Positions 11,417-35,265 of a stretch of DNA of 64,000 bases are shown in pieces. Positions within the stretch are counted from its first letter, which is position 1; every line of letters begins with the position of its first letter. The DNA is from Klebsormidium nitens. Its lineage: Eukaryota > Plantae > Klebsormidiophyceae. The stretch is taken from assembly GCA_000708835.1 (NCBI GenBank), contig DF237368.1, forward strand, positions 16,749 through 80,748, read 5' to 3'. Under the pieces are notes generated by a model that saw only the letters and a program-made list of their open reading frames with translations, was not told the DNA's origin and did not search any database. The position numbers were made by a program, and so were the translations under genes.

Positions 11417-14400
11417 ATGGCCCCGTCCAAAGGCATCCGGCCGCTGGGCATGCAGAGGAACAACAGCGAAATTCCGGTGAGTACTCGAGCTCGACTTTAG
11501 TACGCGCTACCGATCGACGAGTGAAGTTTTCGAGCTTTGCATTTTGCACTATTGGGGAACGGATGCACTGGGCTGTGTACTTTGAGATTATTGGAACGGG
11601 CGCATTGGGCTGCTTTGTCGAGCCAGGATATTGTAGTGGATAGTAGTGGGTGAGACATGGGGTGGGAAAGGGTCACCTTTTCCGAAGATGCAGGAAAGCG
11701 GTTGCTATATATATGCGATGCACTAGGGTCTGTTTGTTGGGGAACGGCGGTCCGATGAAGCTCAGAAGCGTGGATGATGACGAGGAGCTTTGTTGAGAGC
11801 TGTCGGACGGACACGAGTCGCTGACTAGAGATGGTTTGTGGCGTCCGAATTTTGACGTTCCTTGGACGTCTCTTCGGGAAGCCCACAATCAGTAGCTCGA
11901 GAACGTCTCAAATAAGACTTCGTTCGAAAGCGCAGCCCTTGTCCTTCAACGTTCACGAATCTCTAGAAGTCAAGCGTACTCAGCGGCCTGCTTTAACACA
12001 CTTTCCAACAGCCGTTTTCATCTCGTTGACGTTGCCGCCTGAGCTCGTTACTGCGCTGGTTGCAGGCCCCCAACAAGATTCTGGAGCAGCGGGAGCTCGA
12101 AAAGCAGAAGGTGAAGCCACCGTTCTTTGCCCAAAGCGAAAAGCCAAGCCACGTGTGGATCTAAGTGGATCTGAACAGACTTGCGAGTTTCTTTAGAAAG
12201 CTAGGCGTGTACGGATTGCTAAGCAACCAAGTAAATTGGGAATCAGTACCTCGTCAGATGCGCTCGTGGGCTGCCCCCATCTTCTTTTTTCAAATAATGT
12301 TCTGTCCGTTGTCAGAATCTTCAGCACTGTCAGATGAGCTTACCCATCTTGCAAGATGGCTTTTGCCTTAATGGTGAGGTAGGACGAGGACATTTTGAGC
12401 TAGATACCGAGAACGACACGGGCCACGTGCATCTCCTCGCTCCAATACCTTGCATCCGCAGCAATCCTAGCCGCCCAAACTGACGATACAGTCAAGCTCA
12501 GAGCTTGCTAGATACCTGGCATCAGGCTGACTTGTGCAGCTGTGCTACGAGAAGGAAACGGGCCACGTGAAGATTCTGGTCAGCTCTGTTTTCATTTCTC
12601 CAGCCGTGGCGATTCTGCCACTCTGTCTAGAGTGATCCACCTCATGGGCGCTGACGTTGCGCTGACGTGTGCAGCGGCACCACGAGAAGCGGCTGATCCA
12701 ACGAAGACTGGCCCTCGCAATCGCTCTCCATTTCACTCATAGGTATCAGTCTTATTTGGCTGGAGTTGACTGCGACTGGGTTATAGGCTCTAACGTCGTG
12801 CTGACGTGTGCAGCGGCACCACGAGGAGCGGCTGAGCCACGTGAAGAGTACGAGCCAGACGAACGCGCGCAAGCGCCTGGACAACACCGTGCCCATGACC
12901 AGCTTATTGCTGCTGCCCGACCATAAGAAGCTGCTGCGGGAGACGAGTGAGGGCCCGCCACGTGGCACTCAATTATTGGCTCCGCTTCGGAAAAGCGACG
13001 TGATGACTATCTTTGGCATTCTTCGTTTCAGGCAGTTAGCTACAGGAATTGCGTGAACGAACCAAGTCTGCGTTTTGAAGCATCTTCTTTACGGCAAACC
13101 TCTTCGGAGACTCGCAGCAAGTAACGGCCACTAGAAACCCGGTAAAGTTTCCAGCTTAGGAATCCTGATCCTGATGGTTCGAGCTTTTGCACTGATGTAC
13201 CGTCCGGTTAACCGCTGGGTTTGGTGAGTACTTTGATGTAAACGGGAAAGCACTTCGAGCTTTCGTTCCTTAAAGACCGTTTCTTGCAAACGTTTTGTCG
13301 CTTAATTTGTTCTTCGCTCTCCTGGATGGAACCCGAGAAAGAACGACGACGCATCGAGATTATATTCGCCCTTCTGGCAGGGCCCTCCGCTATGCTGTTC
13401 TTTGATGAGCTTTTGTTGACCCTCTCCTGAGCTACCTCAAGCCAAGTGTGAGAGCTACTCCAACTTCCAACTAACCTTCTTTTGCAGGCCGGTTAACGGC
13501 TATCGAGTACGAGAACGGCCAACTGTTAGAAAAGCTAAGCACCATCGCAAAGTCCGGCGCGAGGTTAGCGCCCGACGGATCGGTCCGGCCCGGAACGGCC
13601 CTTGGTAACAGCGGAACCGGAAGCAAGTGGCCGTCAAAAGAGAAGGGGCGCCCCGCGTCAGCGATCGAGGGAGGGCTCAATCAGAAGGCGAGGAAAATGG
13701 AGAAAGAGACAATTGCGAGGGAAAATGAGGTAATATAGGATTGGCAGAAGCCTGGGACCAAGCTTTGTTGAGTGTTCGAGTTGAGATAATTGCGTAAGTC
13801 GAGCTTTCACGAGACAGGAATACAGTAGATGGATGTACAAAAAGTCGGATTGAGACAGATCGAAGAAAGCGACTAAGCTTGCATTTCGAGATCTCGGTTG
13901 ACGTCCTTCTAAAGATGCATGAAATCTGTCAGCAAGTTCTGGTCAATCTTTGGAAGCATGGTGCACAGCATTGACTTCACAAGAAGAAAGCACAGGATAG
14001 AAGTCAAATTGGAAGCACGCAGAGGCTGCACTTGCAATAAGAACACGCTCAGTTAGTCCTGCGGGATTTCCCAGCTTTCTCAATGAGACAAACCCTTCGA
14101 AGACAAAGTGACAGACGACCAATATATCCCGAATATCTCTTTTTCCCAGGTTCTGTTGCACCGGTTGCTCAACGCCCGGGGCAAATACCGCCGGGCCGAG
14201 TGGCAGGAGCACGAGCGCCTCCACCGGTTACGGATGACCCAAGTCTCCCGGTACGGTTCCCCGACCCGATTGCACAAAACCCAAATCCAAACCCAAAGTC
14301 AAACCCCAAACCCCAGACCTCCCTCCCGGTATGGATCCCCGACCCCGCCTTCGCGGCTCGGGGTTTTGAAGTCGCTGTCGCGGCCGGCTTCTCCCGAGCC

Positions 14401-15181: not shown

Positions 15182-16565
15182 GTACATTGATGTTCCTGTT
15201 ACATAAAAGCTAGAAGCGCTCGCGTCTGTAGAATTGCTTTTAGTGCTGGATAAGGAGACCGATTCTCCAAAACGTCAAATGAATTGTAGAAGGGAAGCTT
15301 AGTAATCAATCATAGTCAATGTATAACCTATAGGTTGCAGGTTGTCAAGTGTCAGGGCACAAACAGAGTAACTAGCTGTTTCAATCTAGCCAGCATTCAT
15401 GGTGACCTGTGTGCAGATACCGATATTGCAATGCTGCATGTTTCACATGCGTGTCATGCGGCTGCATTAAAGAATAGATGAACGGTTTTTTCAGATTCCA
15501 CGGCGGGCCCGCAGCTCTGACTCAAGTATCGCGTTCATGTGCGACTCCAACGATGATATCCTCTGCAGATATCGCGGTGGTTCCGAGTACGTCAGATTAA
15601 GTACGTCACATGCATGGCTATATTATCGAATCAGCTGGCACATGCCGAAATCGGCCTACTAAGCTATTATGTAGTCCGGGCGGCCGCCGTACGTTTTGAG
15701 GGAATCTGCAAGCCTATAGTGAATAATCGGCGCATTCACCAATTAAGTATTGCATGCTAAGTTCGTCATGCACATGTTACAAAGTCAGTAAAAGTCATAG
15801 CCCATGAGTATCCTATATAAGTCTCAGTGGCCGCGGCCGCCGGTTCAACTTCGGATGTCACAACCCTTGAGTCTCCAATTGTACGGTATGGAGGTGGAAC
15901 TTGAATGACGAATATATTCGTCATAGACTCGATGGCATTGATTCGATTATCCATGCAAGCGTGAATGACCATGCTTCCTGCAAGAAATGATCACGAAGGA
16001 CTGCCTCAATACTTGACTCGTAGTGCTGCAATAACTGAGAAACTATCGTATGACTATCGACTCTCCCAGTAATGGTTGACACAACGACCACGCGTCCAAG
16101 GCTGTTATGTCGAAGAAAGCTGAGCTCGTCGGTGTTCACAACTGTGACATATGGATGCCGAAATGATCATGCGCGGAAACGAGCCCTCTGTATGCAAAGC
16201 TAATTTCCTAGTTATTGTCTCCGACCAATTCCTCGGACACTTGTGGTTTACAGCTTGCTAAGTGAATACAGTGCGAGCTCACAACACACAAATCCTCTGA
16301 AAGTGTCATTTGGAAGTACTCTAAACTCTTGCTTTTGCACCAACTGACTCTGCTCTCGTTCCGCCCGACAACCTTCCCCTAAGGTGGCTCGCAGACAAGA
16401 CAACAGGTCTTCGTAGTGCTGGCATTTCTATCAAATGGTCAGCTCATCAGACGCAATCTGCGGATCCTGGATAGGCGTGCTTATGAGGACCCGCGAAATC
16501 GATATGGCACGCTCCGAATCGTTGACAGTCGCTTAGGTCAATCAAGACCATGCTCGTTTGCATAT

Positions 16566-19500
16566 TCAGTGAATCTTAGGCCGCTTCGCAGCAACTGGTA
16601 CGTCTGCTGCGCAATCGCCCTGGCACGCTGGCGTGTCTCCACCATGGTTGAATGCAACCGGCTGCAAGCAGGGTGGACGCACCTTTGTAGAAAGGTCACT
16701 ACAAAGACTGATAGTAAAGCACCCCTTTCTAATTGAAAACAGGATAGATGTTCGCAGTCTCGGTTTGTGTTCAGGTCAAAGAGCGGATCTCACAAAAATG
16801 TGTTGAGAATTACGGACCCACCCGCTAGAAAAGGGTCATATTATTGCTGAAATTCGTGACTTGAAAAGTGCCTCGCTCCAAGCGAGCAAAATGCGTCTTG
16901 GACGTACGCAAAGCGGATCGTATGAGCTTTGCATAAGGGGGGATCCGAAGCATCTTATACGAGAGATGTCTGTCCAGGAAAACTGCAAGGGCAGGCTCAC
17001 CGGTCGCTCAGGGACGATTGCGTATCTCTCCGCAGGAGTCGCCAAGGCTGCAGAAAACAGAGGCCAATTCAGCTGCGAGTAACAACACCTTCCCAGAATC
17101 GGAAAGCCGAAGCAGAACCCCGAAACCAAAACATCCCCTCAAGCGAGCTGTCCACATCATCCCCGAACAAAAGCTCACACACGAACAGTGTTCCACAAAA
17201 AACTCTGTGTTTCTTCGAGATCAATTGCAGTCAAGACCGCCAAACCAGGACCCTCGATAACAAATCCCCTCAACCATTACCGCCCGAAAGAGAACCCCGA
17301 ACCACAGAGGTCCTTTCAGGAAACCCTCCCTCCACGCCAATCTCGTATCAATCCCCTCGAAGTAGACCATTGCACACTTGCATCAGCCTTGCCCTTGAAT
17401 GCGGCCACAGGACCGCTTCAGACCCTCCCAAACAAGACCCTCAACCAAACCCCTCCACAGCAGAACCCCAAAGCAGACCCCCAAGGTGGCACCTTTCCGG
17501 AAGCGCCAACTATTCGCCACCCACCAGACACTAGCACGAAAACGGAAACAAGCAACCAGCACGAAAACGGTAACCAGGCACTAGCCGTCCCGGAGCCAAG
17601 CGAATGGGGCCCTAACAGCCCGTCCAAAAAAGACACTCAGGCGGACCGCAGAGGGACGACCAAGAATCGCAGCGCTGCCGTTCAGATTTTGACGTCGAAG
17701 AATGAACGTCCGAGATCTTTTGTTTACACTTGGTTAGGCATGGTTTATTTGAACCTAGGTATCGAAACCGGTCCTACTAAAGTTAGCAACCCGCTGGCTA
17801 AACTTTGCAGACTGGAGTCCCTATATTTGAATCGGACGGTAGCGCTGCGATTTCGACCATCGCGAAGTTCTGCGGTCCGCCTGCACTGCGCACCTGCATC
17901 CGCGTTGAACTTGGAGAAGGCGAGGCCCCGTGCGGCCTGCCCGTCCTTGCTGAGCGCCTCGAGCCGCTTGGGGACACTGCGGTCGACGTTGTCCCCGTGC
18001 CCGAGCTGACCGCTCGTGCCGCGGCCCCACGTGTACACGTTCCCGGCCTCCGTTATGCACGCCGTGTGCCGCCAGCCGCACGCCACCGACATTACGCGCT
18101 GCGACAGAACAAGAGGGGGTGGCGCGTTTATTTTTATGATATCCTTCTATCTTCTCGAAGAGATCTGGGTTGTTCTTCAAGGGAGAGACGAACGCAGGGA
18201 CAAAGTACACAACTCGATTACGCGACGAGATTCGATGTTTTCACAGCGAAGTATTGCTTCCGTGCAGAAATCCAGAAGCTGGGCCGTCTTACCTCATGCT
18301 CCATACCCTTGACCAGTGCCGGCAAGTTGTGGTCAACGTTGTCTCCGGCGCCAACTTGACCAAACTGTAGAAGCGGGCGGTCCAATCAGTGAGAAGCAGC
18401 CGGACATTTGTAAAGGCGGCTTTTAGAGCGGGCATGAAAACAGGCAAATCCGTTCCACTATCGCATGTCCAGGATCGAGACCGATGGAAATCGGACGCCG
18501 TCGAACTCTACGGGCTGGCGTCCCTCGGATCTCGCTGCCCACATGGGGACCGCAACGTACTCAAATTTATTATTTATTTTTAAAGATAATTCAGCGGAAT
18601 AATTTAGCGGAATGATTTGGCGGAGACGTATTTATTCAAAATTTTAATTCATATACTTATATTTGTATATAACAGAGAGACGTATTCAAAGGGACAAATT
18701 ACACCGTTGGTTGAGGAACTCGGGCGACTCTGGTCGAGCATCTGCCTGTGGTTCGTGCGCTTCTCTACTTACAACTGCATGTCAAATGTTTTTCTGTCGA
18801 TCAGACAGCCATTCTGCCACTAGAGCAATTCAACCCACTCGTTGGAAAGACAGGGCGAATGCTTGGGCCTCACAGTCTGCAGGGGCTCGCATGACAACGA
18901 TACTTATAGAGAACCTGGTTGCTCAAAAGGACCCCCGACGAAGAAAAGGAAGAGATCACACGAGGGGAGGGAACCAATATCAGATCGGCTGCCTACCTTG
19001 TTCCATCCCCACGCATACAGCCTGCCGTCGGAGTCGAGGGCCACGGTATGCCTCCATCCGCCAGCAATCTGCATAAAGAGCAAGCGATCCTCACGTTGGC
19101 TTCCGGATCGAAACTTCGTCAATAGAAACCTCTTAGAGCCGATATTCATTTTGAAAAGAGGGATGAAATTGCTGAAAGCAACAGCGGCCGTCTCGTCTTC
19201 CGAGCTGGCGGAGGAGCGCCTGGAAGTATAGAAGCACTTGGACCTGTGCGCGTCCTGCCATCTTCTTTTCACCTCCCAAAGTCCAGTCAATCCCAGGCTC
19301 ACAATGGTCCTTTAGCATCGATTTCATGCTGCTCATTACAGGCGCAGACTGTGTATTGAGAAAACGATAGGCATAAGACAAATGGGTACTTCTTAGGCGC
19401 AGACCAAGTGGACACAGAGCTGTGACCCAAAAGAGCCGAGACCCTACTCTGGCCAAGGCATAGGGAAGCGGATCGCCCTGGTCGCCGCCTCGGGGCCTAC

Positions 19501-22500
19501 ATGGTTAATGTGCATGATTCGGTGACTCGGCCCCCCATCCGAGCGCGGAGGCTTTGAGTGTTGTCGTCTGAGATAACCAACCGGGAGAACGACCGGGATT
19601 GTGACCTGAAGCAGTAGAAGGTTACTGCCACGACTCTTCGATGTAGGATTATCAAAGTTTCGGACCAACAAACTCCGAAACGGAAGCCGGATTCCTGACC
19701 CTCAAACATGACCTGCTCCGCACGCGCACCCACCCGAATCCACGAAAGTAACCCCACCCGTCCCAGGCTAGCATCTTTCTAGCTTACTTTTCTTCATTTG
19801 TGAACTTTTTTGTTACTGCTGCCGCAACCACGCACCTGTCTGATCGTGTGCTCCTGGAGCGCCTCCACCCGGTGCGGCACCAGCTGGTCCTCCTCGTTGC
19901 CGTGCCCCAGCTGCCCGTACTTGCTCCACCCGAATGTGTACATGGCGCCCGACTTGGCCACCACGATCGTGTGCCGCCAGCCGCAGGCGACCATCGTGGC
20001 TTGCTCGTGCTGGAAAGTAGAACAATTCAAACGACTCGGTAATGGAATTTGTGCAGGTTCAAAGGAATGGTGTAGGCGTGAGGTGTGTGCTCCCAGCCAC
20101 AGGCGCTTACGTTGATTGCTCCTGCTAGAATTTGGATTCAGTGGCGGAACTTTCGCAGCTTTGCAGCGAGGGAGTGGGCGCTTTTTTTGTGCCGCCAGAC
20201 TCAGGCGTATTTGGTGGCTTGCTTGTGCTGAAAGAACGCTAGCCGAGTAAGTCAGTACCCTAGCGGATGGTGTGGGCACTGAAGTGTGTGCAACCAACCG
20301 TAGGCGACCATCGTGACTTTCTCATGCTGACGGTTGCAGAAGCCAACGAGTCAAAAGCGGGGAATTTGCAGATTGGAAACAATGTGGATTAGTGACCGGG
20401 TTCTACGAAGCGGAGTCGCTTACATCGTCGATTCTTTGCAGCAAGGTGGATAGGCAATCTTTTTTGGAGCAGGACGGACTGAGATCCGGTTGACCAGAGT
20501 CACTGCGTGCTCTGCTTTGAGCATGTGTTGCTAGCCGATACAGGCAGGAACCTTTTTCTGAAGGCAACACATTTCTTGTCGTGCAGACCAATTCATGCGA
20601 GACATGACAGCGCCTGTTCGTGCATGCAGCAAAACGTTTATTGACGTAAGGTACTGCAGGAACCGCTCTGTCTCTTGGTCGAGTTGTCTGCGCACTGGGT
20701 CTTGTTTGACACATTCCTGGAACAAGCAGATATCCGCTTTGTCAAGTTGCAGATGACACAACCAAGAACACCACAGTTGCAGATAAGTCAAGTTGTTGCC
20801 TGCTTATGTTCATGACAGAGGCCAGCTTCGAGGCTTACCCCAATTGACATAGCCTGCTCCGGCACCAGTCGGTCATTCCTGTCGCCAAGCCCCAGGTTTC
20901 CGTACCGGCCCCACCCCCATCCGTACACTTTCCCGTCCTCCGTAACCGCGGCCGTATGCTCTGCGCCAGCTGCCACCATCAGAACCTTCTTTCCCTGTAG
21001 CAGAACCTTAAATGACTGAGTTACGCTTACAAACGCTTTCCACAGAGTTAAGCGATGTGGTCGAAGTCAATTGAATGACATGTATGGCACATGTTGAAAG
21101 CCTACTTTTGCTGTCTCCCTTTCCTTGACACCTTCTTTTCTCTGGAAAAACAACCCTTGTAAGGAAAAACCTGTTCAGGTTTAACGCCAGGAACGGGAGG
21201 GACGACGAACTTCTCAAACAGATTATCGTGGCACTTTCTTCCAGACTCGGTCAGAAGCTATGGACAAGGGAGATCGAGTCCCAAAACTTGAAGGGGCTTA
21301 CCTGGAATGCTTCCACAGCTTGCGGAACCAATCTGTCCTCTGTATGGCCCAGGCCTAGCTGGCCGTTCTGGTTGCGGCCCCAACTGCATACCAAGAACCG
21401 ACAGCAGAGGAGTCAACTTCTTCCGCAAGAATTGTCAGATAAATGAGTGGTTGGCACAATGCTCGTGTCCCCCCAAGACAACACTGCTCCAGCGGCATGC
21501 CTAAAGCAACCAGACGAGGGGGTTCCATTGGGAACCATTCTCCTTTGAGTTGCTTCATTGGAAGACTTGGCTGTATCCAGTGCTTCAACCATAGCTGGTG
21601 CGCCACAGATTGATGGCCTGCTCCACTATCCTAATATTACAGGCAACCAAGATTGCCAAGCTTCCCACAGAAAGCTCCTTGTCAATTTAAACTCTGGGCA
21701 CTCAGTTCAGGCAGCGCTCAGTTTTGCTGGTCAATAAAAATTCTTCGCACAGATATTGAAGTGGTCAACACGCAATGCAAGCATGGGCTGAAAGCAAAAT
21801 GATTGAGACATGGTTCTGAACAAAGGCTTCTGGCAAGCTCACCTGCGAACCTCTCCGTCATTGACAATGGCAAGGCAGTGACAGTCGCCACAGGCGATCT
21901 GCCGAATCCTAAGACCGTACAAGGCCTTGATAGGATGGGGAACAAAGAGATCTGAGCTGTTCCCATGCCCTAACCGCCCAAAGTCACCCCTGCAGAAGAG
22001 AGATAGGGCTCAATGACTTGTTGGCAATTGCTCCTTGGGACTACATACGCTGACCGAGAGAGCGACGAAGGGCAACCTCAACTGTAGCGTGACAGCTTTG
22101 CAGCATCAGAGATCCGTGGCCTTGTTCAAAAGCAGGCGTGGTCTACTTTCTTGTAGGGATTTGTTGAGGATTGTGTCAAATGCACGCTCACCATCCCCAA
22201 CTATACACCATCTTCTTATTCTCCGTCCAGGCTGTGGTGTGGTCTGCCCCACAATTGATCGCAGTGATCTCTGCATCCTTCAACGTCCCTATTATGACGG
22301 GAAGCGTCTGTTCCTCAGCATCACCGTGCCCCAACTGCCCGTCCTCCGCTCGGCCCCAGGATGCAACCACACCCCCCGCTGCATGGAGATGCAACCTTTC
22401 AGCATTTATCTAATGCGGCTAGCCTTCTGTTTGCTTCATGTTCTCAAGAGCAGCGCCAAAGCCTTGCCATGAACCTCCTACTTGAATGCTTTCGGCATCT

Positions 22501-23462
22501 GCTGGTTGGGCAAATGAAGGTGGTCAAAAATGTTAGTTCTGATATTTCATTCGCATGCCAAAGCTCAACGCCAGTCCTCAGCAAGTACGTGCAATGTGAC
22601 GGGAAGCCAAGGAAGTAATTACACCGCCATGCAGAGCAAGCCAATGTCCATGAAGTATGAGCGGGAAGTTCCACGATCTCCACTGATGGACCTTCAGTCT
22701 GTCTCTCTTCGCCCTACCTCCTCACTGCTTTCATATTATCTTCTGACAAGAGACCAGAGGAAAGAACTCATGCAACCTCATTAGCTTGCAAACGAGCCAA
22801 CTCCATAGAGATTATTATGTCACAGAGTGATGGCATGTAGAATGAGATGAAAAGGACGGAAGCAAGTCAAATCACGTTCAATGCAGAACACACAAACCCA
22901 AAATTGTTTGCATGAAACATAAGAAACACTGCCTCTAGTTTAAGAAACTGGAACAGCGCGCGTGCTGGTCGCATAGCTAATGTCCCTTCTTTTGCACTCG
23001 ACGTCATGATCAGTGGAACTCTTCCCAAGAGACAAGGACATACGCAGAAAATTCTGCAATGGCTGACCAACAGTGTAAACATGTTGCAGGTCCACATGCA
23101 AATCTCTGCTTTCTTTGCACATTCTGGATACAAAACAAGAGGGCCATTCCCGTTGGTCAACAAAAAGCCTAGGAACACAACCTGTTCTTCAAATGCCCTA
23201 ACTTTTGAAAACTCATGGAGAATCAGTTTCCCAAATTGGCCGAAATCATGAGAATCACTCAATCTGCAAAAATCAATCAATGACAACCGGTAATGTGCAT
23301 TTGCAGCTCATCCCAACTATCAGCAAAAGATGTTCCTGGGTTTGTCGCAGGATAAACCGGGGAGAAGGGGCGCTTACATAAAAGAGCGACGGTGTGACTA
23401 GCTCCAGCTGAGAGCCAGAGCACCTCCATGCTCCCATCTGCCTTTGGGCCCCCATCCATCAT
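16566..23462 (-). CDS. UVR8: UV-B photoreceptor UVR8 (11 coding exons, 440 aa)
   Basis: Exons 23462-23378, 22378-22192, 21989-21843, 21383-21302, 20994-20839, 20009-19836, 19068-18997, 18364-18293, 18098-17894, 17047-17001 and 16661-16566 sum to 1323 nt. They contain SAGASHTVALL, SWGRAEDGQLGHGD, WGDFGRLGHGNSSDLF, SWGRNQNGQLGLG, VAAGAEHTAAV, three GWRHT motifs (the W233/W285/W337 triad) and the C-terminal COP1-binding TPAERYAIVPE motif. Confidence 0.97.
20255..20330 (-). repeat. Degenerate duplicate of UVR8 exon 6 acceptor and 5' end inside intron 5
   Basis: The minus strand reads ccgtcag|CATGAGAAAGTCACGATGGTCGCCTACGGTTGGTTGCACAC (HEKVTMVAYGWLHT), versus true exon 6 ttccag|CACGAGCAAGCCACGATGGTCGCCTGCGGCTGGCGGCACAC (HEQATMVACGWRHT). 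It then diverges to LQCPHHPLGY*. Confidence 0.85.
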
Positions 23463-24319
23463 TGCAAACTCCACCTGCCTCTTGGCTACAAAATGCAGTG
23501 AATATTTCTGACTGTAACCAGTAGAGTGAGCACAAAACTTCCTGGCTCAAGTCAATGCGGTCCCTGTTTTGGCATACGATTGAATGACACCCTCTTCAAC
23601 TATTCCTATGACTGTAGAAGCCCTTCAATTCTGGCACAGACAACGAAACCGAGTTCTGCAAGAGTGGTTGGGCGGACTCTGAGCCGCTTGCTGCAATGCA
23701 GACCAGACAAGATCCCATTTGCATCGCATCACCAGAGGTAAGCCGCAAGAGAATGCCGTTCGGATTGGTAGCCCCCTAGCAAACTCCACAGCAAAGCCTG
23801 TTCATGCGCCCCTTCCGACCAGCGCTCTCTAGACTCTAGTCTTGGCGCTCTGCTGGTCTCCTTCAAGTTCCCTTCGTCAGCAAGAGCGGAGCCATGATTA
23901 TTTTTCAAGAGCAGGAAATTGCGGGACGCAACTGCGGCGGATAAGGTTGACACAAGCAACTTGTTGGCGTCCGTTCCATACATCATCAGCGTAAAGAGTG
24001 TCAAGCCTTCAGGCCCCGTCCGATCTTGACCGATGATCTTCTAAGTCCGTAATGCCACGTGTCCACAAAGCCGATGTGAATACCCTCGAGCGAATCTTCA
24101 ATAATATTGCCGAATACCTACATAGTACAGGGCTGGTCGCTTGTTCACACTCGCTTCACCACCACCTCACGAAATGCCTGCAAATTGCAATGTTCAGCCT
24201 GTGCAAAAGACGGAAGACTGGGACAACCAGCTCCTGCGGCCGCCCTTCCATAGGTATGCCCATATAATAGCAGCATTGGGGTGAAGCGAAGCTGTGAGCT
24301 TGAGCATCTTTTTGGCGGC

Positions 24320-27300
24320 ATGGCAATGCAGCGGATTCGCTTTCTGGGACGATTGAAGGGAAGCTTGGAACTCACCACCAGCATTACCGAGGTGGGTTTG
24401 CTTCGCCAACTTCTCCGGTTGAAGCGTCTGCGATTGTTGAAACATTTGTAATTGCAAATATTTGTCGTCAGAGTTCCCAGGCGCTCAGCCGAAACTCCAG
24501 AAACCGCAATATCTGAGGGGAGTGCTTCGCATATGTCTGTCTTACTGGCCCTTGCCACCATTTGGCATTAAGTATCCTACATCATAAGGTCTCTGATATC
24601 CGGCAGTCGCAGCAGTTGAGTCAAAATTATGAGTATCATCTATCAACGCACTGTGCAAGCCTCACTTCAGAATGTTTCAGTTCTCAACTAACTTACCACG
24701 TTGCTCTCTCTTCCACCGTGCTCCGGAAAGGGTGCTTTGGGAGGCTTGCCTGTGCGGAAAAAGACTTGCTGGCAGCAGTACTTTTCTAAGGTTTCCACCA
24801 GTGCACTTTCCGCCAGCTTCCGAGAATTTCCGGTTAGATGCTCAGGAAAGTTATTGGCGTCAAGCAAATGCAAATACATCTGCGCCAAAGTTGCTGCACC
24901 TTGTTTGAGCGAAGAATCTGGCTTCCTTCTTTCTTTGCAGCTGCTCTGGGCAGGGGGCGCCCAGTCTTCACTAGAGTGCCCCCCCGGCGCTCGTGGCTTT
25001 GCGAAGGCTCTCAATCAGAAGCTCAATGTTGTCCTGAAGGAGGTGAGACTGCACAAACACGATTTGTATTTTCCCCTGCAAATGGTTTGGTTCTTGCTGT
25101 GGAAATGATGCGGATCTTACCTTGGCCTTGCCAACTTTCTTTGATGTGTTGTACAGAAGTCCCTACCCCATCTGGGAATCTGATCGATGTAGTGGTGGTA
25201 GGGTATGGATATAGCTAGACATCTCCTGATGGTGTTGCAGAGTAACTGTATTAATCAGACGAGGGTGGCTTGTTGACACTACTATTGATATCGAAAGACT
25301 CCGGGCCTTTGAGGCCGTCAGCCTCATTTTGCTCCACTCTTTGATAAGCAACGTTGAGCCGAGTTCAAAAGATCTGCTGAGAAAATGATGTGGACTGGTT
25401 CAAAGAAGAGAACTCAAACAATGTCAGATCAGAGATTACAGATCAGATTGGATCAAAGATTGAACAACGTCCCTTCTTGTTCCTCAGGACGTCCAAGGGG
25501 TGGGGCAGGCTGGGGAGGTGCTGTCGGTGGCTGCAGGCTTTGCCCGGAACTTCCTGATCCCGCAGAGGAAAGCACTGCCGGGGCTGGAGAAGTATGTCCA
25601 GATGGCACACACCTTCCGACTGGTGAGGGGACTTATTCTATTCTCCTTCTGTCCCTACTTATTGAGGTCGTTGTGACCACAGATGACAGCCGGTCAGAAA
25701 TTCAATTTGTGCCTGCCGACATATCTTTGCAGGTAGCAGGGCCCTTTCATTGTTGAAGGGTTTGCGCATAGTAGAAGATTGCTCCAAAGGAAGCGGGTTC
25801 CTCCACTATTTGAGGATATACTTCTCGGCTTCGTCAAACTCAATGAAGGGGAAAGGGATAGAAAGCCCGCCCATTCTTTCAATATAATTTCAAAACATTG
25901 CGGCAACAATCAGTAGCCTGCGTAAACAGGCTTTACCGATTCTGCTTGAGTAAACTCTTGGACGACCATTCACATACAACAGATGCTCTTTTAGACGAAC
26001 TTGTCTTTCCTCGCTGTCTGCACCTTTGTTCGAACTCGAAATTAATTCTGGACGCAAATGTTGTAGTGTTGGGACAAGCTGTCACGCTGACTGGACACCT
26101 TCTGGGACTCTGACACGGGTCCTTGACGTTCCGACACCCTTCCAATAATCATATCTCCTTATCGGAATTGGCTGATTGCCACTTACAGACAGAAGGGAGC
26201 ACCTGATTGCTCATTTCGTTGGACATATTTTGAACCTTGTCGGACATCCGGACACTTGCAGGACGATAACGTGGAGGTGCTGCAGCGGCGCGCGGGGCAG
26301 GCGGACGCGGACAACCTGGAGAAGCAGCGGCAGCGGATACGGCGGGAGCGGGAAAAGGTCGTGCGGCGATTGACGTCTACCAAAGTGGTAAGATATGGTA
26401 CCAATCTTTCGTCCTTGTATCTTTTGGATATAGCTTTGTGAGATGGTCGCCCGACAATAGCAGAGACGAGAGGATGGTAGTAGAGATACGAAAGCTAGCT
26501 CTTTCGAGGAGCTCAGGATGCTGACGGCGACCAAAGTGGTGGGACCCGGATTGCTCAATACCTTCGGTTGTGCTGGTAAGGGTTTGCAGAGTGTCCTTGA
26601 GAGCAGTTGAGGACAAAAGGATCGAGTCGAGTATTCAGGCAAAGACCTGCGTTCTTGGACGCGGCACTCATGTAGACTTACTTGCCCGATATAAGTTAAG
26701 GTTTGCCGACTGGTTCTGCGAGCATTTCTCGTTGAGCGAGTGACCCCTTGTCTACAAAGCTGCGCCTGACCCCCAACACATTCCTTGCAGGTTTTCTACC
26801 GCAACCTGAACAAGACTGACCGCCTCACCCTTCTTACCCCAGTCAATGCGAAGGACATTGTTGCCGAGGTACGTTTCTGATCAGGATCCCTGTCAAGCCG
26901 AAACGTTCGAGGCGTCTAAAGCCTCTGTTGCTGCGACAAACTTCCCCTCTTAGAACGCTTTGATATCGTTGCAAGCGGATCAGGAGCACGTTGGGACCGC
27001 AAGTCATCCAGTTCGACGAACGAAGTTTTGGGGGTGGCCGTGCTGAGGACGCGTCAATCAAGCAGACAATCAAAAAGCACATCGCTGTCGGCGGAAACGC
27101 AACGTTCATATTGCCCCTCTGTTGGAAGGGTAGATAAGCTCAGATTCAGTGACGCTTTGCGGTGCACTTTTTTGCTGCTCTTCGCGGTTGTAGGATGGAG
27201 CTCTTTCTGTGCTGGCCTGCAGGCTGCCAAACCAGCAGGTCTAAGTCCAAATGTTTGGCATACTTTGAAGCCGAACATCTTCGTGATTCGTCAGCGCTTT

Positions 27301-27567
27301 TCCTCGTTGCAGGTAGAGCGGCAGTTGCGGATCTCCATGCAAGAGGAATGCATCCGGCTCGCCCAACCCATCACCGGCCTTGGAGACTTTGAGGTCCCCC
27401 TCTTGTTGCCGGAAGACGAGGTTGCACAAGAGCTTCAACAGGCCTTGTTAGAAGAAGGGAGCCAGGATTCGTATGACGAGGAGGACGAAGGGCGGCAAAA
27501 ACAGCTGGCCATCACAGTCCGAGTTCGGAGAAAAGGCAAGACCGGGACAGCGAAGGGAGCGTCCTAG
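24320..27567 (+). CDS. RPL9: Organellar ribosomal protein L9 (bL9), mitochondrial type
   Basis: Exons 24320-24391, 24941-25042, 25488-25622, 26262-26387, 26791-26868 and 27313-27567 are all phase 0 with GT-AG borders. The N-domain is KLNVVLKEDVQGVGQAGEVLSVAAGFARNFLIPQRKALPGLEKY; the C-domain is PVNAKDIVAEVERQLRISMQEECIRLAQPITGLGDFEVPL. The ALPGLEKY and VERQL...EVPL features resemble plant mitochondrial L9 more than plastid L9. Exon 1 is less certain. Confidence 0.82.
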
Positions 27568-28857
27568 TAGATGTGGCGCGAAGAACTTCGGAAGTTGTGC
27601 CAAGCACGTTGCTTGGTTTGGAAACAGCGTTTTCGGTCCATGACCGAGATGCGAGGGGTTTTTAGTATGCGGTTCGGCGTTCATTCGGTCGACCCTTTGC
27701 TCCAGGATTCGAGTTGAAAGTTTCTAAGAATCTTGTGCAAAGGCTGGTGTTTTGCAGATATGGCTTGACAGATTGCATGCCAGCCAGGATACTGGCGCCC
27801 TATGTAGGCGGCCGCAGTCTGTAAGAGACACACATGGATCTCCGTTCACCTTGTCTAGCGGCGTGACAGGCGGCTGCCTGCCAAAAAGGGGCATCGTCAT
27901 AACCTCCATGTTCGAAACGGGTATGCTTATTGGAGGTTAAGGTTGCAGTCCGGCCGCCGCTGCAGCGTGTGCTATACTATTTGACAACATTTTCTGAGCT
28001 CAACCGCATTCCGCGGCAGCATTCAACAAGTCCCACACAGGCTCGCGAGCCTACAGGGTCTCCGAGAATGGTCACCGAGCCCACACGGGATATCTCAGAC
28101 AAGGCTCGCATCATGAAACTGAGAGTGATCATTGTTGAATGCATGGACAACATGATGCGCATACGTGCCACAAATGGTCGATTCGATATAACGTCTGCAA
28201 TATATACCAAAAGTCACAATTCGAGATTCCCAGCTATCGAGCATAGATACATACCAACCATAATATGATTCGAGCATACCGCAATCAATTGTTCGTGGCG
28301 GAACATGCGCATGAACAATCGAACATGCAACTTAGCATGCAATCGTTTAGCCGCGCCCCATGAGGCCCCCGGGGCGGCCAGGCAACCACGCATCAGCCCT
28401 AGTACGGTACCTATAGAATTTGGCAGGTTCCTAATGATCCTGTCGGATCCGATCGGGCTGTGCGCGGCGAACATTGGCACATAAATTATCAGAAAGCTGC
28501 GTGCCGGATCACTAGGGTTTCATACATACATCAGAGCGATTCGTCCGACGTGCACTGGACTTCTGAATTCAGACGTCATAGTTTGAAAGGCAGCATGCAT
28601 GGCGCAGCATTGATGAGACATTTGCTAACTTGACCTTGAGGTCGTCATGCGCATACCAAGGGTGCATTTGCAGACCTTGGCCTTCCAACTCATTCTCGCT
28701 TCCATACAGACAGGTTTAGTATACCTTGCACCAAGCAAGTGCCAATCTTCTTTCCAAAGCAGGCAGACTGCTCAGAGCAGAGCCGTTACCTTTCCCCCCT
28801 CTTGTTCAGCATCTGATTCCATTCCGTGCAGCAAACGCCCCATTATAAGAAGACAAC

Positions 28858-30766
28858 CTAGGCCTCCTTTGTGATGAACTTGACCTTGATGGGCATCTTT
28901 TGCGCAGCAATCGCCATAGCCGCCCGCGCCACCTGTGGTGACACCCCCGCCATCTCATATATGATCCGCCCCGGCTTTACGACAGCCACCCAATGCGACA
29001 GGGACCCCTTTCCGGACCCCATACGAGTTTCCGCCGGCCGCATCGTGATGGGCTTGTCAGGGAAAACCCGGATCCAGATCTTGCCACCACGACGGGCGTA
29101 ACGAGTCATCGCCCTACGTCCCGACTCAATCTGGCGGGCTGTGATCCATGTTGGCTCCTGAGCCTGTAGAGCAAAGCTCCCGAAGGCAATGGTGTTCCCC
29201 CGCGAAGCCTTGCCCGTCAACCGGCCCCTGTGCTGCTTCCGGTGCTTCACTCTCCGAGGGCTGAGCATGCTCCGCACGACGCCCTGCCGACAGGATTAGC
29301 GGAAGAGTATCAGCAACCCTGTGGATATGCGCCGACCAACTCCTGACCACGTCTTACACCTTCCTTACTCGACATTGATGTGTTTCGGGAAGATGAGTGC
29401 TTGGCTCGTGCTTGGCTTGTGCTGAAAGAGGACATTCTTCAAGGTGCTGTGCCCCTATTTCAATATGTTCCAAAAGAGCAAATAGCAAAAAAGATCCACA
29501 AAGCAGATGCACTATCATTAAAAGGTTGGTCTTACAAAGCTCCTGTTGCGAGCAGTGTACCAAACTTCGACGCACGACCAGCGAAGAGCAGGGGGCTGAA
29601 AGAACTGAGTAAGCATCAAGATGCCATGAGACAAGATGTTGAATGGACCGTTGAAATTAAGGTACCAGCCAGTCTTTTCTTTGGTTACTCGCGAATGGTC
29701 GGATCCTTGCAGTTGCCTTCACCAGCTCAACTTTAATGCTGACTCCTACCACCACAGGTCGTTGATCTTTGAGTCTGCACAAGGGGCCTTTGCAGATACT
29801 TGAAAGTGCTCTTAAGGTGGTGCCAGCTTCCACAAGGTTGGAACATCTTATGAGCCGTCACCTCACCGGCTGTGAAGCCGCCCCACTGTCGGCCTCCTCG
29901 GGCTTTACCACTGGGCTGCTTGGGCGGACAAAAGGCATCGCCACATTGCTCCTCTGGACGAAGCTGCTGCGGCTGAGCTGAGAAGGCCGCAGGTTTGCCC
30001 TGCGATTGCAAGTAGCTCGGGTCTACGTATACAATTGAGGAGGTAGATGCCCTGGCCAGGCCCTCGTCTTCATAGTGAGACTCGTCATTGTGTCATGCTT
30101 GCTTGAATTCAAGCAAACCCCTGTCTTCATAGTAAATCCAATCATGGTATCATGCTTGTTCGATAAGCAATGCACAACGACTCGGCGGCGCTGTTCCCAT
30201 ACTCTATTCCAGAGTAAGTGCTAGCAATCAACATAGAAGGTTTGAGGGATGGACAGAACCAATGCACTGACGAGCAAACCCCTGATTGCTTTGAGGGACA
30301 CCCTGTAATAAACTTGCAGCGCGCACTCAACACGTGTGTTTCGTATCCTCTGCCTTACTTGGCACCCTAAGCCACCATACAAGTCACCCCCGTCAGTATG
30401 GCTTGACGTCCGGAAGAGACCAACGATCATTGCATTCAGTCAGGGTGGCCAAACGAGACTGGTAATGACACGGAAGGGGCAGGAGACATCCAGTTGCTGA
30501 TCCTCCGGCTCTGCTGCTAGCGGTGGCTCACGATGAGAACCTTGAGATGAACCGACTTTGATATCGCCCCTGAAATGCGAACCCTTTCCTTCTGGGTGGA
30601 AGCTTGCCAGGCTCAAAACATGAAGCAGGCAGGGGGACGAGTTCTCTTACCTGCCAAGCAGCGCGGCGCTTCTGCAACTCTCAAGAGGCCTTTGTGCCAC
30701 CGCCCTCTGGCCAGTAAAGGCCCTGGCAGCGCAAGACGAGGACAACGACACCGTAGAAGACGCCAT
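28858..30766 (-). CDS. rpl16: Nucleus-encoded plastid-type ribosomal protein L16 (uL16c) with an ~88-aa N-terminal transit-peptide extension (224 aa)
   Basis: Exons 30766-30651 ([38 protein letters not shown]), 29999-29867 ([28 protein letters not shown]...) and 29283-28858 splice in frame with gtaag/gtgag donors and gcag acceptors. The mature part [15 protein letters not shown]...[48 protein letters not shown]...WVAVVKPGR is cyanobacterial/plastid L16. Confidence 0.93.
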
Positions 30767-31317
30767 CCGGTCCACCCCAGATGTTTACAAGAAAATGCAG
30801 CGAAACCACCACCGTCCCTGATGCTTTTCACTACCCCGCTGCTAAACTTGCCAGCATTACCCTCTGCGAAAGGGACGCCTGCACCACTGCAACACCTTGC
30901 CCAATGCGCCTGTTCTCTCAAGCTTGTCCTTCCCTCCTGCAGGTCCAAGGGTGTGACTCCGTCCCTTTTTGCTGCGTCTACTTTATTGATTTTTGACACC
31001 AGCAGTTCAACGTCGAGTCCTTTGCTGCTGACACAAATCCTGAAGTTTCGGTTTGTGTATTTCATGACATATAAAGTGTCAAGTTTTAACCTGGAAAAGA
31101 AGGAAAGCAACCAAGTTCGCATTCATCCACGACTCACGAGGGTGCAGCAGCAGACGTGCAGCTTGTTGAAGTTGGGAAAGGGAGGCCGAGGTGGATTGCC
31201 CTGTTGCGCACTGTTCAGGGGGCAACGCAGGATCCTTCAAATGCAAGCGGAAAGGAGAGCGGATTAGGTGAAGAAACGCAAGCCCCGGTTTGATTGGAGT
31301 CTGCATTGCTCCAAACG
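30767..31317. promoter_or_regulatory. Putative bidirectional promoter shared by rpl16 and plastid RPS5
   Basis: Only 551 bp separate the two divergent ATGs (30766 on - and 31318 on +). No individual cis-element was identified. Confidence 0.55.
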
Positions 31318-33407
31318 ATGGCGTCCACAGCGGCCGTCAAAACCCTGTGTGTCGCGTCGAGCAGCATCAGCAAGGCAGCGTCCCATGCTTCCGGCGCTCC
31401 TTCCGCCATCTTGCCGGCCCCCTTCTTTGGCCGCGCTCTGACTGGTTCAAAGGCATGCTCGAGCGCGTTCAGTGGCCGCCAGTTGGGCCTCTCAAGATTT
31501 ACCACAAGTGGGAGGCAGTGTGTGATGGTTGCTGATGCCCCAAGCAAAGATACTGAGGAGGCAAAGCCGCCGTCTTATTACATGAACTTTGAGCCACCGG
31601 CGGATATTGATGAGTTCACCCGGGACTTCATGAACAGCACCCTTGAGGACGAGGACCCCGAGTATGACACGATGTGGAAGAAGTTTTTCTTTGATGAGGA
31701 CGAGGAAGTTGGTGAGTGTACGGATGCTTCCTGATGCAGAAAGAGAATCCCTGTCACTTTTGGAAAAGCGACATTGATGAGTAGTGTTTGCTGGCTCTTT
31801 GACTAGGGAGGTGGGATTGCCTGCCACCGGGGATGTCCATTCTGAGTTACATTTGACCTCCGGTATCTCCGGTTCGCGAGTAGGCTCTCGAATGTGCACC
31901 TCTGGTAATGGTTGAGCGCCTGCATTGGCATGGCTGCTCCTGGTAATGCTTGAACGGACAGGAGTGAGCTGCAGAGAGCAGGGTTTTGTTGCACTCGTGA
32001 CTGCCTCGGATGCAAGAGTGAGAGCACTATCATCAGCGAGCAGAGGTGGTTTATGATGGGCATGAGCACTTTGACGCCTCTGTGGGAGTGTGCAAGCCAA
32101 ATGCACGGGTTTGTAGGGGACAGCTACTGGTCATCATATGCACTCCGTCTGAATTGCTCCGTATTCACAAGGATGACAACTCCAATGTAGAGGACTGCAT
32201 TAGGGTTTGCTGCTTTGCCCTGTCGCTATGAGCATCAACAGGGGTGCTACACTTTAGCTCTTAAGAAAATGCTCAGGGCAACATATGCCTCTTGTCTGAT
32301 GTCTACAGTCTATTATGATCAGTGGTAGCTCGAATGCGTGTGCAGAGGGTCATCTCGTTGAAGCATGAGTCATGCAGCCTCCGGTTCTTCAATAGAGGAA
32401 TTGTAGACCTTGCTCGCTTGCACGTTCCCTCTTCAACATAGAACCTGCACTCTAGTCAGAGGAATTGAGTGACGAGTTAGCAAAGCACTCAAGGACACAC
32501 ACATAAGTTCTCCTCTTCCACCTGAATGAATCGTCATTGTCTGTTGAGCACAAATTCGATTGAGATGACGCAGTTTGTCTGTGGAAGTTGCTGGAACGCT
32601 GGCCTCCTCATGCGGTTGATATTGCTTACCTTCTCCCAAGCTGACCGATGGATTCCTTTGTTGTTCACGTCCCTCTTTGACTAGTGGTCTCCCTGCAGCA
32701 GCACGCGGAGGCAGACAAATTCTGCCTGTCAGCAATTGGCAGGTTGAGTGCGGCCCGTCCAGAGTTTCAGAGGTTTCTGAAGTGCACCCAACCACCGACT
32801 TGAGGGCAATCAACCGTATCAAACGAGTGCGCTGACAGATTTGCTTGTTCCACTGGTTGCAGTTGAGGCGGTGGATGACGAAGAGGACGGCATCAAGCGG
32901 CTGCGCCCCCCAGAGCGCCGTAAGAAGGACCAGTACCAGGAGAACGTGGTTCAGGTCTCTCGGGTTAACAAAACGGTTAAGGGAGGGAACCAGCTGAGCT
33001 TCCGGGCCGTTGTCGTCATTGGGGATGGCAAGGGCGCCGTTGGAGTCGGTGTCGGAAAGGCGAAGGAAGTGATGAACGCGGTGCTGAAGGCGGGGGTGGA
33101 TGCGAGGCGGCACATTATCAAGGTCCCGTTGAACAAGCAAAAGTCGATCCCCCATCGGATGGAGGGGCGGTACGGGGCAGCCAAGGTGCTGTTACGGCCG
33201 GCGCCTCTGGGGACGGGTGTCATTGCGGGCGGTTCGGTGCGGACGGTGCTCGAGATGGCGGGCGTCGAGAACACCTTCGGAAAGCAGCTTGGGAGCAACA
33301 ACCCGCTCAACAACGCGCGGGCAACGCTGGTTGCGATCGGAAACATGTTCGACAGGAAAGAGGTGGCTGAGTTCCGGAAGGTGCCGATCGAGAGCTTGCG
33401 GGTATAG
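31318..33407 (+). CDS. RPS5: Plastid 30S ribosomal protein S5 (uS5c) with transit peptide
   Basis: Exon 31318-31711 ([19 protein letters not shown]..., Ser/Ala-rich, then acidic) joins via gtgag...gcag to exon 32863-33407, which carries [42 protein letters not shown]...[42 protein letters not shown]. Confidence 0.93.
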
Positions 33408-35265
33408 AGGGCGTGTTGGTCTCGAAGTGGGTCTGCACAAGACCCTAGGTAACCGAAGATAGAAAGATTGAATGTCTAAACGGAAGGTGATGAGCATCGT
33501 TTTCGAAAAGTTCGATGACATGACCCCTTGATGCTGAACATGTATGCTCCTAGCGATGACAAGCCTTAAAAGCACTTTTCCAAGAAGGGTGCCGAGTCTT
33601 TGCAATGGACAGCACCCTATATCCTCGCTAAAAGACCACTGGCCCAAGAAAATATTGCAGACGTCGAAACGGCCGGATTGGACGTTTGTCCATAGATTTC
33701 ACATGGATGCATTCCCTGCCATGCAGAACTTTGTACCCTTCACGATGGTCACTTTTCATACTCGTCGTAGCCACTAGGCCATCTAGGCTTGATACCGCAC
33801 TGCAGTTGAAGCACAAAGCTTCGTGGCCGCTTGGCCAGCCTGTTACTAGCTATATTTAAGTATGTCAATCCACGGTTGTAATTAATATATCCGATCGTAC
33901 ATGGTATGTTTTTGACGTTGAGTAGCTAGAGAGAAATCTGCTCGATCCAGCCCGCTGGATCGAATACGCAGTGCATCATTGATTCAACCATATACTACGT
34001 GAATTCTGCACTACATCGCTGCCGGAGATAAGCTACGTAACTCCTCGTCCGTAGGAATTCTGAATTGGGCCTCGCAAACCGTGGCGGTCTTGTAGGTACG
34101 ATCATCATATGCATCATTTTGGCTGGCGGCCTGGCAGGCTCATGAGCAGATCCGCGGCCATGTGTGTTGTCAGCTGGCAAGATACTATAGACATGACGAT
34201 GATCAGGTGTGAACAAACGCCAGCCTGTGGATATTGAAGAACAAAACCGATTACATGGTCTGGCCCGGCCTGCCAATGAGGTGCCAGGATGTCACTAAAG
34301 ATTTGTAAGTCACTTTGTGCAGCCTGGCTTTCCGGCTCTCAAACAGTGACGCATCCTCATTTGCATGGCCGAGTAACTTTGTGATTGACTGAGCTCGACC
34401 GCACGCCCCTTATTAACAAACGTGTCTAGCACGCTCACACCAAATAATCAGATCACGGCCTCGCGATATAACTCAACACACAAAACCGTCACCGGACCTT
34501 TAGAGTTTCATGTCCACCATCCTATGAGCTGCAAGCTTTGAAAGGCTTCAGACTGTACTTCTAGCTGATCTAAATCTACAGAAAACATTGGTTCATAGGA
34601 CTCAATAATGGGTAACTACATCGCCTCAGGGTAACCCAACGAAGTCTTCCAAGAATGGTCTCCCCAAGACCTTCTCCCAGTCCGACTGCTTTGCTTTCAA
34701 AAAATGGATGCTTCGACTGGGAACTACCTAGCTAGCTCCCTCTTGAGATTGCTGTGTTGCCTTTAGGTGTATGAAGTTGACAATCTCTTCGCCACCCCAC
34801 TCTGCAGAGACGGAAAAGCTTCAGTCGTTGTGTACCGTTCTCTAATCACAGCAGCTTTAGGTGACTGCTATGTAACAGCGTGTTAGCGAGCAGGTTGGAC
34901 AAAAGTCCACCTTCGGCGACTGAAGGCCAAGTTTTTCACTTTCGTGGTCGCCTTACTTGATGCCAAGAGATCATTTCCGCAAGCAACCGCGACTGCAAAT
35001 ATAACTGCCTTGCAAAACGCCGGCAATCTTGGTTGCTGAACGCCCGCTTTCAGCGTCACAAGACTTCACCAGCCTGCTTGACCGTCCCGCTTCGACAGAC
35101 GGCCATCTCCAAAGCCCCAACCAAAGACTTACAATTGTTATGATCGTTCGGCTTGCTGGACGGACTGGAGCCTCTAACCTCTACCTAATTGACTTGAAAA
35201 CGAGACAACATCTGACAGAACCCCAAAGAAAGAGCTTGAGCCATACGCTGCCAAACGAAGCTGCT

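Follow-up and report, generated by a model that had tools for sequence, protein, structure and literature searches.

How does a photosynthetic alga without a plastid-encoded rpl16 obtain the chloroplast ribosomal protein uL16? The question is raised by a locus in a 64,000-nucleotide stretch of the Klebsormidium nitens genome (contig DF237368.1, positions 16,749 to 80,748; hereafter, the window), where a gene for a plastid-type L16 lies on the reverse strand, head to head with RPS5, the gene for the plastid ribosomal protein uS5. The plastome of Klebsormidium flaccidum lacks rpl14, rpl16, rpl23, rps3, rps15, and rps16 (Civan et al. 2014, PMC4007539), and no other streptophyte alga has lost rpl14, rpl16, and rps3, Entransia retaining rpl16 with the group II intron rpl16_9 (Lemieux et al. 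2016, PMC4877394). Given that these plastome papers already noted the missing genes and implied nuclear dependence, a nuclear copy is the expected explanation; a nuclear rpl16 was not identified in either paper or in the genome paper (PMC4052687), and none was found in the literature that we searched. The first-pass annotation of the window, made from the DNA letters alone, stated that rpl16, with rpl14 and rps3, is absent from Klebsormidium plastomes, which the two plastome papers bear out for K. flaccidum, and proposed a functional endosymbiotic transfer of the plastid gene. We find that the window contains, very likely, the working nuclear gene for chloroplast uL16 (PRPL16) of this Klebsormidium alga: the gene is plastid-type, spliced, and expressed, with a leader contributed by two upstream exons, as expected of such a transfer.

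The L16 gene consists of three exons. The coding part of exon 1 (30651-30766, ATG at 30766-30764) specifies leader residues 1-39, exon 2 (29867-29999, 133 nt) specifies residues 39-83, and exon 3 (28858-29283) begins with five linker codons, GVVRS, followed by the ancestral rpl16 frame, from the Met at 29268-29266 to the stop at 28860-28858. The two introns are spliceosomal, with GT..AG borders; intron 1 (30000-30650) is 651 nt long, and intron 2 (29284-29866), of 583 nt, parts the leader from the mature protein. Joined, the exons form a 675-nt open reading frame (ORF) for a precursor of 224 aa plus the stop, in which residues 1-88 are the extension, ending in GVVRS at 84-88, the ancestral MLSPRR start follows directly, and residues 89-224 are uL16. 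The gene model of the first-pass annotation, with an 88-aa Ser/Ala/Arg-rich extension in frame, interrupted by two spliceosomal introns of which the last is placed five codons ahead of the ancestral Met, agrees with this ORF and with the RNA joints described below, and all the coordinates and numbers given there were correct. The 5' untranslated region (UTR) occupies 30767-30958, its length of ~160-190 nt reflecting RNA contig ends at 30926, 30956, and 30958, and the 3' UTR is covered at 28700-28857, with RNA contigs extending beyond 28700. Intron 1 also contains an imperfect tandem duplication of ~50 nt (30060-30165, recognized by eye) and a perfect 18-nt palindrome (~30099-30116).

The mature part is a complete L16 of bacterial type. 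Exon 3 matches TIGR01164 (rplP_bact; cutoff 76.85 bits) with 199 bits over profile positions 1-126 of 126, and PF00252 with 170 bits over positions 1-132 of 132. Among proteins of solved structure, the best match is chloroplast uL16c (210-215 bits), compared with 150-180 bits for bacterial L16 and 95 bits for plant mitochondrial uL16m, and the conserved motifs RKQHRGR and RMGSGKGS are both present. The GC content of third codon positions (GC3) is 0.72 in the leader and the mature part alike, and 0.74 in RPS5, so that the initial description of a plastid-type L16 with GC-rich codons stands. The closest named plastid L16 proteins are those of Klebsormidiophyceae, with Hormidiella, Streptosarcina, and Entransia among the matches; the mature part is equal in length to, and shares 76-79% of its amino acids and both motifs with, the plastid-encoded proteins of these three algae and land plants, and it is 73-79% identical to cyanobacterial L16. 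The plastid genes have no leader, and those of Entransia and land plants contain a group II intron behind codon 3; the window gene has the two upstream spliceosomal introns instead, with no trace of a group II intron at that position.

Transcript assemblies and comparison with relatives show that this nuclear gene is spliced, abundantly transcribed, and conserved. The locus is represented in RNA runs of at least seven studies; runs under two organism labels, dating from 2012-2024, match the window at 100%. We aligned to positions 28700-33600 of the window the Logan contigs of four such runs, each from a different study; they agree to at least 99%, without a single differing letter. The mean contig depth is 166-1094 in exons and 0-10 in introns (exon depth at least 17 times the intron depth), which identifies these contigs as RNA assemblies. 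All four runs contain the L16 joints 29283/29867 and 29999/30651 (GT..AG, reverse strand), exactly as they had been predicted, and the RPS5 joint 31711/32863 (GT..AG, forward strand), and the divergent transcription of the two genes that had been proposed is likewise apparent in the RNA contigs from all four.

Two protein searches, with a length filter that admits 224 aa, returned no protein identical to the L16 precursor, and the public gene list may thus be without a correct model of this gene. The top match was a 99% orthologue from a metatranscriptome: a spliced transcript of 1098 nt (L001, JGI metatranscriptome 3300030631) that encodes a 224-aa precursor (P0001), with a mature part 99% identical to that of the window. 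Aligned with the window, this transcript gives three blastn blocks whose ends coincide exactly with the exon borders, both introns being missing from it; its 5' UTR aligns up to 30898, and at the other end the alignment reaches 28747. At a synonymous divergence (dS) of 0.3-0.5, L001 comes from an environmental sample and represents a close relative of the window alga in which the mRNA for the L16 precursor is expressed and spliced.

A second, more distant relative (hereafter, the metagenome relative) is represented in the metagenome assemblies L004/L005 and L006 of the Joint Genome Institute (JGI) and in the SRA runs L002 and L003, with an identical mature protein (P0002). The same three L16 exons are present: exon 1 is 116 nt long and 67% identical to that of the window in amino acid sequence, exon 2 has one codon less than in the window, and the last intron has its acceptor, again, five codons ahead of the Met. 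Exon 2 shows 80-90% nucleotide identity in L001, L002, and L006. The synonymous divergence between the window and the metagenome relative is ~0.8-1.1. The ratio of nonsynonymous to synonymous divergence (dN/dS) is 0.006-0.03 in the mature part and 0.19-0.32 in the leader, in comparisons with dS as high as ~1.1; judged by these ratios, L16 is under strong purifying selection.

The leader itself has a composition that fits a chloroplast transit peptide, and we infer that it functions as one. Residues 1-60 consist of 22% Ser, 17% Ala, and 13% Arg, with a single acidic residue and a net charge of +7, which is close to the composition of the RPS5 leader. The first ~65 residues are well kept across the relatives, and the ~20 residues before the Met are variable. 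A candidate origin by exon shuffling from a host gene was not borne out: with residues 1-88 of the orthologue as query, a search of proteins recovered that orthologue alone, without homology to another nuclear N-terminus, which is weak negative evidence given that the search covered proteins of 123-392 aa sharing 5-residue words. By blastn, exons 1 and 2 each occur only once in the 64-kb window.

Phylogenetic analysis places L16 with the plastid proteins, as the first reading of the locus had supposed. In the maximum-likelihood tree of 121 L16 sequences, the window L16 and the two orthologues form one long-stemmed clade (100/99*; stem 0.5 changes per site), which lies inside the plastid clade (100/95*) together with every named streptophyte plastid L16 and apart from the sampled cyanobacteria. 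In the approximately unbiased (AU) test, a clade of nuclear L16 with the plastid L16 of Entransia, Hormidiella, and Streptosarcina is not rejected (p = 0.38), and neither is a clade with Hormidiella and Streptosarcina alone (p = 0.34).

These observations suggest the following history. The plastid rpl16 would have entered the nucleus once Entransia, Hormidiella, and Streptosarcina had diverged, because the plastomes of these three algae still encode the gene, and before the sampled Klebsormidium lineages separated from one another; the transfer, the leader, and both introns predate the split from the metagenome relative, given that the latter has the same three exons. Because the group II intron of the Klebsormidiophyceae rpl16 (after codon 3) is missing from the nuclear copy, the source of this copy would be a spliced RNA or, alternatively, a plastid gene already without that intron. 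It would then have gained nuclear codon usage and the two upstream exons for the Ser/Ala/Arg-rich leader of 88 aa with almost no acidic residues. The L16 mRNA is spliced at the two GT..AG introns and would be translated in the cytosol; the leader would direct import into the chloroplast and be cleaved, and the mature protein of ~136 aa would join the 50S subunit, replacing the lost plastid-encoded uL16.

The second question is how the transferred gene came to be expressed, and here the neighbour on the other side of the spacer has to be considered. RPS5, on the forward strand, is a two-exon gene for a 312-aa protein. Exon 1 (31318-31711) encodes a Ser/Ala-rich leader and an acidic N-terminal extension, with no Pfam match, and is 70% identical in amino acid sequence to the corresponding protein of the metagenome relative (P0121); after an intron of 1151 nt with GT..AG borders (31712-32862), exon 2 (32863-33407, stop at 33405-33407) encodes the S5 N and C domains (TIGR01021, 195 bits; PF00333; PF03719). 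The S5 part scores ~210 bits against spinach chloroplast S5 and ~140 against bacterial S5, which supports the original designation of RPS5 as plastid-type. The ATG codons of the two genes, at 30766 and 31318, are separated by the 551 bp that had been reported. The RPS5 5' UTR (31180-31317) is delimited by RNA contig starts at 31180, 31185, and 31216, and between the two transcripts remains a spacer core of ~220 bp (30959-31179; 44% GC), with no coverage in three of the four RNA runs and bridged by one contig from run X1. This single contig, which spans 30650-31711, is independent proof of the L16-RPS5 adjacency in the organism from which the window comes. With divergent transcription and less than 1 kb between the 5' ends, as determined from contig ends, the L16-RPS5 spacer has the architecture of a bidirectional promoter. 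Each 5' UTR, as bounded by RNA contig ends (30767-30958 for L16, 31180-31317 for RPS5), contains one upstream ATG.

The arrangement in the metagenome relative is different. We reached its locus by a protein search with RPS5 exon 1, followed by three exact-protein look-ups, and established block colinearity by blastn, tblastn, and tblastx comparison of L004, L005, and L006 with the window; a scan of JGI metagenome contigs with RPS5 exon 1, and with an exact degenerate DNA pattern over the junction of the leader and the mature part, gave no match. On the relative's contig of 29.6 kb, identical in both assemblies, 3.4 kb of unrelated sequence is followed by L16 exons 1-3, the stretch colinear with the window (from 29968 down to 16254), another 4.2 kb of unrelated sequence, and RPS5 exons 1-2, which are 72% and 87% identical to those of the window at the nucleotide level. 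RPS5 is accordingly ~19 kb downstream of L16 and in the same direction. In the window, the colinear block (16254-30766), comprising an RCC1-repeat gene, a bL9 gene, and L16, is inverted relative to RPS5, with one breakpoint in the spacer (30767-31317). There is no L16-like sequence near the relative's RPS5 and no RPS5 within 3.4 kb upstream of its L16. Three stretches of the relative's contig have no match in the 64-kb window by blastn or tblastx: the 3.4 kb that precede L16, the 4.2 kb that separate the block from RPS5, and another 4.2 kb beyond RPS5. In the promoter-proximal regions of the window and the relative, neither shared k-mers nor local alignment rise above shuffled sequences. Because the flanks and the promoter-proximal regions are too diverged to align, either of the two arrangements may be the older one. 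About 1 kb upstream of the relative's L16, on the opposite strand and divergently oriented, L006 contains an ORF for 331 aa (13229-14224) that has no Pfam match and nothing similar in the window; feature-based comparison places it next to zf-MYND proteins (0.93), which is a lead only.

The first-pass annotation held that the transferred gene became expressed by borrowing the back side of the RPS5 promoter, with stoichiometric co-regulation as the outcome. Under this scenario, rpl16 landed beside RPS5 and was first expressed from the back of its promoter, the pair is ancestral and coupled, and the inversion in the relative came after L16 had acquired a promoter of its own. The proximity of the two genes fits well, with ATGs 551 bp and, by contig ends, mRNA 5' ends ~220-260 bp apart, as does the fact that both products are chloroplast ribosomal proteins. 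With ~45 chloroplast ribosomal protein genes among ~16,000, a given gene would have such a neighbour only ~0.3% of the time, by a rough estimate, and the pair may be the older of the two arrangements. Against it stand the intact three-exon L16 of the metagenome relative, under strong purifying selection with RPS5 ~19 kb away and 3.4 kb of unrelated sequence upstream, and the absence of any shared element above shuffled expectation in the upstream regions. The conservation of the pair in a related alga, which the annotation had suggested checking, did not materialize, and capture of the RPS5 promoter as the cause of L16 expression and of a stoichiometric co-regulation is not supported; we regard it as unlikely, if far from negligible. 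Because the relative has L16 under strong purifying selection without an adjoining RPS5, the pairing is probably not needed for L16 function, and L16 appears to persist without it. The L16-RPS5 adjacency is specific to one lineage, and may be an ancestral state that the other has lost.

A distinctly improbable variant has L16 first expressed elsewhere and brought next to RPS5 when the K. nitens lineage later underwent the inversion, the pairing then being kept for its shared bidirectional promoter and co-regulation. The same adjacency and the same low chance expectation speak for it, as does a breakpoint located exactly between the two 5' ends, with both genes left intact. A single rearrangement is, however, indistinguishable from a neutral event, and any tolerated breakpoint must be intergenic.

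At the far side of the inverted block is the RCC1-repeat gene (16254-22387, reverse strand), which has multiple exons and is colinear with the relative; the block stops at the 3' end of this gene. Tail to tail with L16 lies a five-exon gene for the ribosomal protein bL9 (24962-27567, forward strand), an adjacency that is kept in the relative (L005, 2261-5742). The 45-aa N-domain exon of this gene scores 33 bits against E. coli L9, 25-27 against plant mitochondrial bL9m, and 21-24 against chloroplast bL9c, so the gene is probably the mitochondrial one, and the idea that L9, L16, and S5 form a plastid ribosomal gene cluster was considered and rejected. The mitochondrial look of this neighbour, along with the ambiguity that N-terminal leaders can show, might suggest that L16 serves the mitochondria, or both organelles, rather than replacing the plastid uL16. 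This is highly improbable: the mature part is plastid/cyanobacterial in type (215 vs 95 bits) and falls in the plastid clade (100/95*), a plastome without rpl16 requires a plastid-directed copy, and the composition of the leader matches that of the adjoining plastid S5. Finally, a dead insert of plastid DNA (NUPT) or a horizontal gain from a cyanobacterium or another alga, for which one might cite the 73-79% identity to cyanobacterial L16 and the placement within the plastid clade supported at only 84/82, is exceedingly improbable in view of a branch of 100/95* that parts L16 from all sampled cyanobacteria, the non-rejection of a clade with Klebsormidiophyceae, nuclear codon usage, and the splicing, high expression, and purifying selection (dN/dS 0.006-0.03) that refute the pseudogene reading.

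Several points weigh against the picture of a nuclear replacement gene derived from the Klebsormidiophyceae plastid and flanked by a bidirectional promoter. In the free tree, the nuclear L16 clade is sister to the rest within the plastid clade (84/82), and the grouping with the plastid L16 of Klebsormidiophyceae is not recovered, a position that is probably due to the long branch. The plastome described in the two papers is that of strain SAG 121.80, whereas the window most likely comes from strain NIES-2285 of K. nitens, formerly named K. flaccidum, and for this strain the absence of rpl16 is presumed from the literature. The spacing of ~220-260 bp between the mRNA 5' ends of L16 and RPS5 was measured from RNA contig ends, not from mapped transcription starts. 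The arrangement in the metagenome relative, in which the head-to-head pair is not conserved and the two genes lie ~19 kb apart at opposite ends of the inverted block, comes from two metagenome assemblies, perhaps of the same material, such that a shared misassembly is possible.

The functional transfer of a ribosomal protein gene from plastid to nucleus is a known phenomenon; what is unusual here is that the gene is the core gene rpl16. The nuclear rpl22 of pea and other legumes, reportedly described by Gantt and colleagues in 1991, is a classic case. It resembles the window gene in the loss of the plastid gene (for the window alga, a presumed loss), the N-terminal extension of the nuclear copy (a transit peptide in rpl22, a putative one here), and the spliceosomal intron between the leader exon(s) and the ancestral frame. 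The differences are that the gene in the window belongs to the plastid ribosomal core, that its host is a streptophyte alga, and that two exons share the leader. The angiosperm cases of rpl32 (Populus, Thalictrum), rps16, and infA (PMC8429499, PMC7026143) are similarly recent, lineage-specific relocations in which a targeting sequence was acquired, but several of these involved a leader from an identifiable host gene or a takeover by a mitochondrial paralogue, whereas in the window L16 the mature part is the plastid gene itself, and the leader search found no donor. Compared with the bidirectional promoters of co-functioning nuclear genes, the L16-RPS5 spacer is similar in its divergent orientation, in the distance of less than 1 kb (~220-260 bp, by contig ends) between the 5' ends, and in serving a single complex; unlike in those pairs, the pairing is not kept in the relative, and any co-regulation is hypothetical here.

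Maier et al. (2013, PMC3879969) count Rpl16, Rpl14, and Rps3 among the members of a plastid "ribosomal gene core", note that the plastids that lost this core are "always nonphotosynthetic", and argue from this that ribosome assembly requires synthesis of the core proteins within the organelle. Import of uL16 by a photosynthetic alga would be a counter-example to the rule that the core is lost only in non-photosynthetic plastids. The broader proposition that Klebsormidium imports the core protein uL16 (and presumably uL14 and uS3), in contradiction to the published rule, and that the K. nitens lineage, in addition, secondarily fused the L16 and S5 promoters into a selected bidirectional unit is, taken as a whole, quite unlikely. 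The metagenome relative adds a caution that applies beyond this locus, namely, that a head-to-head arrangement of genes for one complex need not show how either gene became expressed. The L16 gene itself would represent an expressed, conserved nuclear replacement of one core member in a photosynthetic alga, and with it the hypothesis of an assembly constraint becomes testable: does imported uL16 assemble normally into the chloroplast ribosome of Klebsormidium, and do uL14 and uS3 behave alike?

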